IMG/VR virus record: IMGVR_UViG_3300027749_002876
Span: 1-64,000 of that record
Reading direction: 5' to 3' (one strand)
Length of the DNA stretch: 64,000 bases
The translations under genes were made by a program, and so were the position numbers. Numbering within the stretch: position 1 is the stretch's first letter; each line of letters opens with the position of its first letter. The notes below the pieces were generated by a model that saw only the letters and a program-made list of their open reading frames with translations, was not told where the DNA came from and did not search any database. Positions 27,917 to 30,473 of this stretch are shown piece by piece.

Positions 27917-28597
27917 ATGAGTTATAATAAAACAAAAACAGATCCAGAGTTGGGTCAACAAGTGCATGAACACTTAGTCAAAATGGGTGTTGAAACCCCA
28001 ATCAAACATCGTAATCTAGACCGTAAAGAAAAGATTGATATCATTGCAGGTAACTTCACCGAGATCATGCGTGTTCTCGGTTTAGATTTATCAGATGATA
28101 GTTTAATTGACACACCTAATCGTGTCGCCAAGATGTACGTCAACGAAATCTTTTGGGGACTAGACTATGAAGCATTCCCTAAATGTACAACAGTTAACAA
28201 CAAGATGCAATACAATGAAATGGTTGTAGAGCGTAATGTTAATGTTCAATCTAACTGCGAACATCATTTTGTAGTCATCGATGGGTTGGCTACTGTAGCT
28301 TATGTCCCTAAACAAAAAGTATTAGGGCTTAGTAAGATAAACAGAATTGTAGAATATTTCAGTAAGAGACCTCAGATACAAGAGAGGTTAACAGAGCAAA
28401 TTTTTCACACCTTACAGTTTATCCTTGATACAGAAGATGTTGCAGTTATGATTGATGCACAACACTATTGCGTTAAAAGTCGTGGCGTAGAAGATACGGG
28501 TAGTAGCACAGTTACTTGTCGTTTAGGTGGTGGTTTTAAAACTGATCCTGCCGCGCGTAGCGAGTTTTTACAAATTGCTAACAAAGGTTGTAAATAA
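27917..28597 (+). CDS. folE: GTP cyclohydrolase I
   Basis: TPNRVAKMY, CEHH, GLSKINR, QIQERLT, HYCVKSRG. Confidence 0.97.
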   Translation: MSYNKTKTDPELGQQVHEHLVKMGVETPIKHRNLDRKEKIDIIAGNFTEIMRVLGLDLSDDSLIDTPNRVAKMYVNEIFWGLDYEAFPKCTTVNNKMQYNEMVVERNVNVQSNCEHHFVVIDGLATVAYVPKQKVLGLSKINRIVEYFSKRPQIQERLTEQIFHTLQFILDTEDVAVMIDAQHYCVKSRGVEDTGSSTVTCRLGGGFKTDPAARSEFLQIANKGCK

Positions 28598-28794: not shown

Positions 28795-29030
28795 TGGGCT
28801 ACCGTAAGCAAATAGATTATAATAGTGTACATCATCAAATCTATATGAGTGGAGTTGAACTTCATAGTAACTATAATGACGGTTTCAATCAATTTGAAAT
28901 CAAAAAAGATTTACATAAACTGAAATGGTTGTTAGATGAAATTATAGCTGATGCGCCTACATTTACAGGTGAGGATGAATTTTTAAAAGAGCACGACCAA
29001 ACCAAAATGTGGAAAACACTTTCAAAATGA
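28794..29030 (+). CDS. hypothetical protein
   Basis: TAATG-coupled ORF. Confidence 0.7.
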   Translation: MGYRKQIDYNSVHHQIYMSGVELHSNYNDGFNQFEIKKDLHKLKWLLDEIIADAPTFTGEDEFLKEHDQTKMWKTLSK

Positions 29031-29500
29031 TATTTAATCACATTAAAAAACTTAAAGCAGAAGGTAAACGAATTGGTATTACATTTAGTACTTTTGACAT
29101 GCTACACGCCGGACATGTTGCTATGTTAAGTGAAGCTAAAAATCATTGCGACTACCTTATCTGTGGATTACAAACTGATCCAACAATTGATAGGCCTGAT
29201 ACTAAGAACAAACCTGTACAAAGTATTGTAGAACGACAGATTCAACTTGCGGCTTGTCGCTATGTTGATGAAGTTGTTGTTTATCAAACTGAACAAGACC
29301 TAAGAGACTTGTTACTTATTCTTCCAGTAGATGTACGCATTTTGGGCGTTGAATATAAGGATAAAGACTTCTCAGGCGCAGAAGAATGCTATAATAGAAA
29401 CATTGAAATAGTATTTAATGGTCGTGACCATAGTTTCAGTTCAAGTAGTTTACGGAAACGAGTGGCTGATGCCCAAATCATTAACACTCTTAATAAATAA
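29027..29500 (+). CDS. glycerol-3-phosphate-cytidylyltransferase (TagD)-like protein
   Basis: STFDMLHAGH, RYVDEV, RDHSFSSS. Confidence 0.85.
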   Translation: MIFNHIKKLKAEGKRIGITFSTFDMLHAGHVAMLSEAKNHCDYLICGLQTDPTIDRPDTKNKPVQSIVERQIQLAACRYVDEVVVYQTEQDLRDLLLILPVDVRILGVEYKDKDFSGAEECYNRNIEIVFNGRDHSFSSSSLRKRVADAQIINTLNK

Positions 29501-29504
29501 CTAT

Positions 29505-29570
29505 AGCGGTCTTCGGACATCATCCCGCTTTACAAATTCTGCTGCCTATGCTATAATACAACATAGGAGA
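29505..29570 (+). ncRNA. candidate structured cis-regulatory RNA (preQ1-I-like pseudoknot + anti-SD hairpin) upstream of queD
   Basis: AGCGG/CCGCT stem, UUCG sub-loop, UUACAAA tail, CCTATG/CATAGG hairpin over AGGAG; begins 5 nt after TAAATA. Confidence 0.45.
29529..29557 (+). promoter_or_regulatory. sigma70-type promoter for queD
   Basis: TTTACA-17 nt-TATAAT with extended TG. Confidence 0.65.
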
Positions 29571-29574
29571 AAAC

Positions 29575-30057
29575 ATGGCAAACAAAAAATTCTTTTCAAC
29601 AAAGACATACAGACAAATAGGTCCTGTCGCATATCGTCAATGGCGTGCTGACAGTCATTGTAACTTAATTCATGGTTACGCTATGAGTTTCCACTTTGAG
29701 TTTGAAGCTGACACATTAGATGCTCGTAATTGGGTAACTGACTTTGGCGGTCTAAAGCCACTCAAAGAAGTATTAGAAGAATGGTTTGACCATACTTTAT
29801 TAGTTGCACAAGATGACCCTATGCGTGAACATCTGTTAGAACTAGGTAGATTAAAACTAGCTAAGATTACAGAAGTAGAACGTACTGGTTGTGAAGGTAT
29901 TGCTGACTTCTTATACGAATATATTAACACAATCTTTTTACCCAACTGCGGTAGCGAAGAAGCTAAACGTGTATGGTGCTGTAGAGTAGAGGTACGTGAA
30001 ACTGATAGCAATATGGCAGGACGTGGTGGTCACAGGGAAGATAGAGAGTTTGAATAA
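29575..30057 (+). CDS. queD: 6-carboxytetrahydropterin synthase
   Basis: CNLIHGY, DFGGLK, FDH, E-T motifs. Confidence 0.9.
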   Translation: MANKKFFSTKTYRQIGPVAYRQWRADSHCNLIHGYAMSFHFEFEADTLDARNWVTDFGGLKPLKEVLEEWFDHTLLVAQDDPMREHLLELGRLKLAKITEVERTGCEGIADFLYEYINTIFLPNCGSEEAKRVWCCRVEVRETDSNMAGRGGHREDREFE

Positions 30058-30473
30058 TGTTGAAAACAGAAATGGTAGATAAGGTAGGACATACCTTAGT
30101 AGACATATTTCATAGGCTTGCATTGTTTGCTATTGGTGCCGCAACAGTATGGGCAGCCGGATGTACTTTCGTTGAACTGTTTCAGAAACATCATGCCTCA
30201 GTCGGTGACCTGTTGTTGATGTTTATTTATTTAGAAATGGGTGCAATGGTAGGCATTTATTTCAAGACCAATCATATGCCTGTTAGGTTCTTGCTATACA
30301 TTGCAATCACAGCACTAACACGACATATGGTAGATATAATGAGTCATCAGCCAATTAACATTGTTGAAATGTTATCTGTAGCCGGTTCTACATTTGTTAT
30401 AGCAATAAGCGTATTAGTTATTAGATATACTAGTGCAAAATATCCTAGCAACAATAAAGACGAGGTAGCTTAA
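30057..30473 (+). CDS. psiE: phosphate-starvation-inducible PsiE-family membrane protein
   Basis: DLLLMFIYLE, PVRFLLYIAITALTR, four hydrophobic segments. Confidence 0.85.
   Translation: MLKTEMVDKVGHTLVDIFHRLALFAIGAATVWAAGCTFVELFQKHHASVGDLLLMFIYLEMGAMVGIYFKTNHMPVRFLLYIAITALTRHMVDIMSHQPINIVEMLSVAGSTFVIAISVLVIRYTSAKYPSNNKDEVA

Follow-up and report, generated by a model that had tools for sequence, protein, structure and literature searches.

A small knotted RNA at the 5' end of the message of a queD-like gene, conserved in hundreds of uncultured freshwater giant phages, was identified as a strong candidate for a new, phage-borne riboswitch class. It has the shape of the preQ1-I riboswitch but does not pass the tests for membership of that family. 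Its 45-nt core precedes about 95% of related T-fold (PTPS/QueD-like) genes in IMG/VR phage contigs, whereas it is essentially absent from cellular genomes, and covariation supports an H-type pseudoknot. Three different expression platforms are joined to this core, and in each of them the 3' strand of the second pseudoknot helix can instead pair with the start codon and Shine-Dalgarno (SD) region, so that a folded knot would mean an open ribosome site (ON logic). A guanine-like or pterin-like metabolite as effector is our inference.

Sequence Features of the Leader

The window analyzed here is the first 64 kb (64,000 nucleotides) of a 524,565-bp IMG/VR virus record, and it carries a T4-like family-B DNA polymerase, a DNA ligase and an ATP-dependent protease. 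The leader lies between a cytidylyltransferase-like ORF (29009-29500) and the gene of a 160-aa T-fold protein (29575-30057). A genuine FolE is encoded upstream at 27917-28597, and a PsiE-like gene, a 63-aa ORF and a divergent QueE-like gene follow downstream without gaps (to 31514). Read directly, the sequence contains the following features:

29493-29499 (+), ATAAATA box resembling a T4-type late promoter (promoter function inferred), ending 5 nt before P1 and overlapping the stop codon (29498-29500) of the upstream ORF
29505-29509 (+), P1 5' strand, AGCGG, pairing with 29525-29529
29510-29514 (+), L1, UCUUC, with C29511 and U29512 invariant; the first base and the U-rich linker vary in sequence and length
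29515-29522 (+), P2 5' strand, GGACAUCA, with A29517 bulged in this copy and U29520 the invariant mismatch base
29523-29524 (+), L2, UC, with C29524 invariant and unpaired, directly 5' of the P1 3' strand
29525-29529 (+), P1 3' strand, CCGCU
29530-29539 (+), L3, the A-rich tail UUACAAAUUC, which together with T29529 also reads as the -35-like hexamer TTTACA (29529-34)
29540-29546 (+), P2 3' strand, UGCUGCC, with C29542 opposite U29520; the shared "switch" strand
29545-29567 (+), P3 hairpin, CCUAUG (29545-50) with CAUAGG (29562-67), its 3' arm covering AGG of the SD and its loop holding the -10 box
29549-29557 (+), extended -10 element, TGcTATAAT, of a nested sigma-70-type promoter signature with its -35 at 29529-34 and a 17-nt spacer
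29565-29580 (+), ribosome site: SD AGGAG at 29565-69, ATG at 29575-77, and second codon GCA at 29578-80, which can pair with UGC at 29540-42
29575-30057 (+), T-fold protein of the PTPS/QueD family, the gene under predicted control, first in a tightly packed run

All motifs listed by a previous sequence-only reading of this DNA were found where it had placed them, and its observation is confirmed, with three corrections. First, the helix between loop and tail, described as an imperfect CAUCA/UGCUG pairing (29518-22 with 29540-44, one U.C mismatch), is longer: it is GG(A)CAUCA with UGCUGCC, and it shares C29545-46 with the SD hairpin. Second, the 15-nt loop had been described as starting with U and ending with C, but its first base is not conserved (U 30, A 30, C 22 of 82), whereas the second and third loop bases (C, U) and the last one (C) are invariant. 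Third, the hairpin proposed to hide the SD hardly varies (CCUAUG/CAUAGG in 133 of 144), so that covariation says little about it.

Taken alone, the leader is not more structured than chance, since its MFE of -11.9 kcal/mol is no better than that of shuffled sequences (z -0.13). Rfam scans at permissive thresholds on the window and on two variant forms of the element gave no real match. The preQ1-I model (RF00522) returned no hit even at E<=10 on 116 nt, and the only preQ1-II (RF01054) hit, of 17.7 bits against a gathering score of 47, fell on the unstructured flanks, i.e. the -10 box and the SD, with the 69-position core skipped. An intrinsic terminator was ruled out because there is no T-run and no terminator call, and a C(UUCG)G mini-hairpin inside the loop of the window's copy is not kept in relatives. 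A leader peptide or other coding reading was also rejected, because indels in L1 are of any length.

Distribution of the Element

In order to find relatives, we performed a protein-guided scan of IMG/VR, which found 297 close relatives of the gene. All 80 loci kept from them carry the leader at 75-100% identity, even where the upstream gene differs, in which case homology often begins exactly at the ATAAATA box or at P1. A 20-nt pattern derived from the core hit at least 120 further viral contigs. To avoid circularity, we then selected 160 loci solely by two other T-fold protein subtypes (C and D). About 148 of the 155 loci with enough upstream sequence carry the element, including forms that the pattern would have missed. 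Each of five relatives of about 290-350 kb, four of them near-complete, has exactly one copy, and the order FolE, element, T-fold gene, QueE-like gene (with other genes between) is conserved.

In 596 Gb of bacterial and archaeal genomes the 20-nt pattern gave 52 hits, near our chance estimate of about 69. The covariance model confirmed only two of them, both in one Haliscomenobacter MAG and probably in binned phage contigs. A BLAST search of the leader and its neighbourhood against 50,697 cultured phage records found no leader match; Sinorhizobium phage Phosso has the same T-fold subfamily but no element. We found no description of this element in Rfam 15 or in the literature searched.

Covariation Supports an H-Type Pseudoknot

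Covariation across relatives, which the sequence-only reading had proposed as a test, was examined in three alignments. In A1, made with MAFFT, the covariation score was 0.202 against 0.086 in shuffles. In A2, which was model-guided, it was 0.272 against 0.087, and 94.7% of cells paired. In A3, whose loci were selected by protein alone, it was 0.514 against 0.148+/-0.012 (0 of 500 shuffles reached it) and at most 0.127 when partners were slid, 96.9% of cells paired and 9 of 11 pairs changed on both sides. Despite the fact that the CM-made alignments lean towards the modelled structure, the three alignments agree that both P1 (29505-09 with 29525-29) and P2 (29515-22 with 29540-46) covary far beyond chance, and the element is therefore an H-type pseudoknot. 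Frequent G.U pairs make the fold specific to the sense strand.

P1 occurs as AGCGG/CCGCU, ACCGG/CCGGU, UGCGG/CCGCA, AGAGG/CCUCU, AGUGG/CCACU, AGUCG/CGACU and AUCGG/CCGAU. In A3, 99.3% of its cells pair and 4 of 5 pairs show changes on both sides (AU/UA, GC/CG/UA, CG/AU/UA). P2 appears in 40 strand combinations, for example GGCG/CGCC, GGUG/CACC, GGGC/GUCC and ACGC/GUGU, and always carries a U.C mismatch at its third position; one P2 position shows four Watson-Crick pair types (UA 31, GC 19, CG 13, AU 4). In the 82 distinct A3 sequences the second and third L1 bases (C and U, each 82 of 82), the U.C mismatch and its neighbouring C-G pair, the L2 cytosine (C29524, 82 of 82), the G-C pair that closes P1, and L3 positions 7 (A), 9 (U) and 10 (C) (82 of 82) are invariant, whereas A at L3 positions 3 and 5 is present in 80 of 82. 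Eleven or twelve unpaired or mismatched bases are thus invariant across T-fold proteins that fall into four subtypes sharing only 38-44% identity, although part of the L3 and P3-loop conservation in the main platform class serves the nested promoter signature.

These data also bear on whether the conservation could be at the DNA level only, as a promoter cassette or recombination module like the promoter-plus-stem-loop cassettes of T4-type phages, with the RNA pairings being incidental. The left edge of the conserved block coincides with synteny breaks, a degenerate second copy flanks an inserted methyltransferase gene in one instance (L088), and promoter motifs overlap L3 and the P3 loop. However, compensatory changes in two interleaved helices, with many G.U pairs on the sense strand only, cannot come from a promoter constraint, classes without the nested promoter keep the core, and the element is single-copy per genome rather than a dispersed repeat. 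The covariation already largely refutes this explanation, which we regard as very unlikely.

Three Expression Platforms Share the P2 3' Strand

Three unrelated architectures follow the same core. The window's class (151 unique forms) has CCUAUG/CAUAGG over the SD and the -10 box in the loop; class alt1 (33 forms) pairs UGUCGUC with GAUGGCA across the start codon, with an inner stem over the SD; and class alt2 (25 forms) pairs GCCAUUG with CAAUGGC. In each class the 5' arm of the closing helix is, or overlaps, the 3' strand of P2, and the helix covers the SD and/or the AUG. In the window, 29540-44 pair in the nested MFE fold with 29576-80, the start codon region, and P3 shares C29545-46 with P2. 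A GCA touches or overlaps the start codon in 134 of 150 element-linked starts, against 80 of 581 other starts.

Over 216 unique platforms, the mean folding energy was -9.1 kcal/mol with the P2 strand free and -4.3 with it blocked, and the number of platforms with at least 3 SD bases paired fell from 183 to 57. The energy of the P2 duplex is of similar strength (median -6.4 kcal/mol), so the switch is balanced, although P2 of the window's own copy is weak (-3.3). The P3 hairpin and the alt2 closing helix are conserved but barely covary, despite rare compensated P3 variants (CCUAUA/UAUAGG and CUCUAUU/AAUAGAG), and the closed state consequently rests mostly on complementarity and energy models.

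Promoter Signatures

A TAA[AG]TA box lies within 30 nt upstream of P1 in 112 of 149 unique contexts, most often 5 nt away. T4-type late promoters carry a TATAAATA-like box about 6 nt upstream of the start and are used throughout the phage genome, and NATAAATA is upstream of 53 of 209 ORF starts in this record, against 3 of 209 coding controls. In the other classes a complete TTGAYN-N16-18-TAnnnT ends most often 7 nt before P1. Both arrangements would put the 5' end of the RNA at P1. Metatranscriptome contigs cover the leader and extend upstream of P1, but they cannot resolve starts or exclude DNA carry-over.

The nested TTTACA-17-TATAAT with an upstream TG (29529-57) is the best sigma-70 match in 8 kb, at 11 of 12 plus TG. 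Across the 151 unique main-class platforms the -10 hexamer is TATAAT in 97 and TAAAAT in 28, and nearly all others also fit TAnnnT; the upstream TG is kept, the -35 is TTTACA or TATACA, and the spacer is 17 or 18 nt. A transcript from this predicted promoter would lack the closing strand.

These signatures could also fit a device without effector, in which the 5' hairpin or pseudoknot stabilises the long (late) mRNA and sets a fixed, lower translation rate while the nested promoter gives a fully open early mRNA, that is, the ligand-independent late shut-off proposed by the sequence-only reading. The nested promoter signature is conserved in the main class, long transcripts can form the closing helix whereas short ones cannot, and 5'-terminal stem-loops are mRNA stabilisers. 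This explanation remains possible but unlikely, since it does not explain why about a dozen unpaired bases and a U.C mismatch are invariant, why P2 and the closing helix are kept mutually exclusive in three different platforms, or why alt1 and alt2 keep the whole device with no nested promoter and a sigma-70-type promoter upstream.

Predicted Mechanism

Our best explanation is that the leader is a cis-acting RNA switch whose 5' end is an aptamer-like H-type pseudoknot made of P1, L1, P2, L2 and L3 (29505-29546). In this view, the 3' strand of P2 has two possible partners, the aptamer loop, which completes the knot, and the start-codon region, whose pairing together with the P3 hairpin over the SD closes the ribosome site. 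When the knot is stabilised, the ribosome site would open and the QueD-like T-fold protein would be made, and the tightly packed downstream genes may follow by coupling. Long transcripts would start at P1, from the ATAAATA box in this phage, whereas short transcripts from the nested sigma-70-type promoter would escape control. The stabiliser would most likely be a small molecule with a guanine-like face, with the invariant unpaired C29524 at the P1/P2 junction and/or the invariant U29520.C29542 pair as candidate readers. With ON logic, our single best guess is a pterin or guanine-type precursor of the pathway, such as the FolE product, rather than preQ1, although the ligand cannot be named from sequence.

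The analysis itself demonstrates the conservation, the two pseudoknot helices, the invariant core, the competing complementarity and the promoter signatures, whereas ligand binding and identity, any docking of L3 along P1, the direction of regulation, promoter activity and the transcript starts are inferred from sequence alone. We are highly confident that the element is a structured cis-regulatory switch of some kind, whereas the small-molecule riboswitch reading is only somewhat more likely than not. A tiny invariant core, two covarying interleaved helices, interchangeable platforms, a position at the 5' end of the mRNA and linkage to one metabolic gene are the marks of a riboswitch, but ON control of a biosynthetic gene by a pathway-related ligand is unusual. 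It is possible, though slightly less likely than not, that this is a new riboswitch class living only in phages, in which a 45-nt pseudoknot aptamer senses a pterin or 7-deazapurine-pathway intermediate and turns ON translation of a QueD-like enzyme, with a promoter built into the expression platform letting early transcripts bypass the sensor. That would make it a convergent or very distant cousin of preQ1-I with opposite logic.

The pseudoknot could alternatively be an operator for a protein, either phage-encoded (possibly the T-fold protein itself) or a conserved host factor, whose binding tips the balance between P2 and the sequestor. There is one copy per genome, always before one gene family, and such a one-gene regulon also fits autoregulation by a protein; phage leader pseudoknots that bind proteins are an established kind, and the structure and switch evidence fits a protein effector equally well. 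Nevertheless, the RNA core stays invariant while the linked T-fold proteins diverge to about 40% identity across four subtypes, which argues against co-evolving self-recognition, and the tiny pocket-like set of invariant unpaired bases and the interchangeable platforms are typical of metabolite aptamers. We therefore consider a protein effector unlikely, but it remains possible. The precedent is the phage T4 gene 32 mRNA leader, where an H-type pseudoknot at the 5' end of a T4-type phage mRNA governs translation of the gene behind it. That element is a nucleation site for autoregulation by the gene's own ssDNA-binding protein and represses, and it is not known to have a competing RBS helix, a set of invariant loop bases shared across divergent proteins or a metabolic gene.

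Comparison With Known Riboswitches

The interpretation given by the sequence-only reading, a preQ1-I-like variant sensing a deazapurine or guanine (CDG or 7-deazaguanine) or a ligand-independent late shut-off, was supported in part. The riboswitch-like character with preQ1-I-like architecture, the conserved nested promoter signature, late-type or sigma-70-type promoter signatures placed so that transcription would start at P1, and the lack of a QueC above cut-off were borne out. In contrast, membership of preQ1-I was not supported, nor was the regulatory direction, since the P2 3' strand competes with the helix that hides the ribosome site and a folded aptamer should open the site rather than hide it. 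The late shut-off was not supported either, as it does not explain the platform classes predicted to be driven by sigma-70-type promoters that have no nested promoter.

Like the preQ1-I riboswitch (RF00522; types I-III), the element is a very small H-type pseudoknot at the 5' end of an mRNA with a 5-bp G/C-rich P1, a conserved unpaired C directly 5' of the P1 3' strand and an A-rich L3 of about 10 nt; it is linked to a 7-deazaguanine pathway gene and is predicted to control translation. In preQ1-I the highly conserved L2 cytosine reads the ligand (PMC10622847), and a similar role for C29524 is inferred by analogy. However, there is no match to the family covariance model at E<=10 on three forms of the element, the conserved L1 uridine that reads the ligand in preQ1-I is not conserved here while the next two bases (C, U) are, L2 is 1-3 nt, and the element is found only in phages. 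P2 is 7-10 bp with a fixed U.C mismatch, against 3-4 bp in preQ1-I, and the SD is not part of it but lies about 20 nt downstream in a separate competing helix, so that the platform logic reads as ON rather than OFF. In addition, the phages lack a QueC over the family cut-off and any TGT/DpdA, so that preQ0 or preQ1 need not be their product. A divergent true preQ1-I member that binds preQ1 or preQ0 and represses queD is thus very unlikely, even though a que-type gene lies downstream.

The THF riboswitches read the pterin ring of the ligand between an opposed conserved U and C, 7-deazaguanine and dihydroneopterin being among the compounds used (PMC9881143). The THF-II riboswitch (folE motif) and the three-way-junction site of THF-I provide a precedent for translational control of a pterin-pathway gene, and the phage element has an invariant opposed U and C inside P2 and precedes a T-fold enzyme, predicted to use a pterin made by the neighbouring FolE, next to folE. 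THF-II is nevertheless a rod-like hairpin with internal loops and not a pseudoknot, it is an OFF switch of bacteria, no Rfam match was obtained, and a 1x1 U.C mismatch may be too tight to hold a ligand, so that the resemblance is a lead only. Translational ON riboswitches such as the add adenine riboswitch share the logic, in that the closing strand of the aptamer is shared with a helix that masks the SD or AUG and ligand binding frees the ribosome site, but there the aptamer fold is different (a three-way junction) and the ligand is known.

Few riboswitch candidates are native to phages. This one is abundant, since it sits before T-fold genes that match in hundreds of IMG/VR contigs from freshwater phages, whose near-complete genomes are about 350 kb, and this supplies rich natural variation for structure work. 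It would add an ON-type relative to the smallest known aptamer fold and would give a compact natural part for engineering, i.e. an aptamer with swappable platforms and a built-in bypass promoter. It also shows that a negative single-sequence fold statistic and a negative Rfam scan can hide a well-supported RNA.

The Downstream T-Fold Gene and Its Pathway

We also analyzed the gene under predicted control and its pathway. No QueC passed its family cut-off and no TGT or DpdA was found in this record or in five near-complete relatives of about 350 kb. If a ligand is found, it would show what these phages make with FolE, a QueD-like enzyme and a QueE-like enzyme in the absence of QueC and DpdA. 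The T-fold protein matched Pfam PTPS at 58 bits, whereas its NCBIfam QueD score of 37 bits was below the 89-bit equivalog cut-off. Its invariant motif is SHC-x3-HGY, which differs from the CxxxHGH motif of QueD. A predicted structural model of the protein (pLDDT 89.7), computed without one row that came from an annotated phage record, matched best 3jyg, an uncharacterised Wolinella protein, followed by E. coli QueD, PTPS and QueD2.

Organization of the 524-kb record and of the leader region

When we compared the whole 524-kb record (G000) with itself, it looked like about 1.5 related genomes joined together. Region 18-152 kb aligned in inverted order with 512-399 kb at 75-88% identity (within the window, 18-64 kb against 512-471 kb), and the segment at 172.9-177.0 kb was repeated at 520.5-524.6 kb at 99.6%, whereas complete relatives are about 350 kb. 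The second copy of the element (500080-500129, minus strand) therefore belongs to the other genome.

Synteny between the window (29493-29505) and the relatives (loci L003-L082) was broken exactly at the late box or at P1. The upstream gene was a cytidylyltransferase in some relatives and unrelated genes in others, so leader and T-fold gene move as one unit. In addition, a degenerate second copy of the aptamer-like core, with the same loop and a damaged P1 and tail, was observed in one locus, L088 (5-55), about 1 kb upstream of the intact one, where it sits before a 309-aa SAM-methyltransferase-like ORF (68-997), which suggests that the leader acts as a recombination boundary for gene insertion. 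At the start of the cytidylyltransferase ORF of the window (29003-29065) we also detected a weak SAM-II-like hit (19.5 bits, E 1.7; gathering score 44), which is most likely due to chance.

Among 185,579 species genomes, the only genuine copies of the element were found on two contigs (183 kb and 39 kb) of one Haliscomenobacter MAG (L215, 4382-4434, and L243, 1260-1310). These are probably phage contigs binned with it, and the presence of SD-led genes and TATAAT promoters argues against a Bacteroidota host.

In a few main-class copies of the element (L269, L278, and L317), L3 reads TTGATA, TCGACA or TAGACA, which is closer to the TTGACA -35 consensus. The same bases seem to be pulled between aptamer and promoter roles.

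The T-fold protein and other encoded proteins

The "QueD" protein (window 29575-30057) represents a distinct T-fold subfamily with four subtypes, whose invariant motif is S-H-C-x3-H-G-Y, plus D72-H73, E107, and E139. Canonical QueD has CxxxHGH, so the metal site may differ. A search of the PDB by sequence gave no hit for this protein, whereas by predicted fold it was nearest to 3jyg, and then to QueD/PTPS/QueD2.

A PsiE-family membrane protein (window 30057-30473) is wedged between the T-fold and the QueE-like genes. Among 120 related loci it was found only once, so it appears to be rare among them. Finally, a PP-loop ATPase of about 300 aa (429037-429225 of G000, minus strand, and relatives) gave weak N-terminal QueC-like matches (14.7-26 bits) in most of these genomes, and it could be either a very divergent QueC or an unrelated ATP pyrophosphatase.
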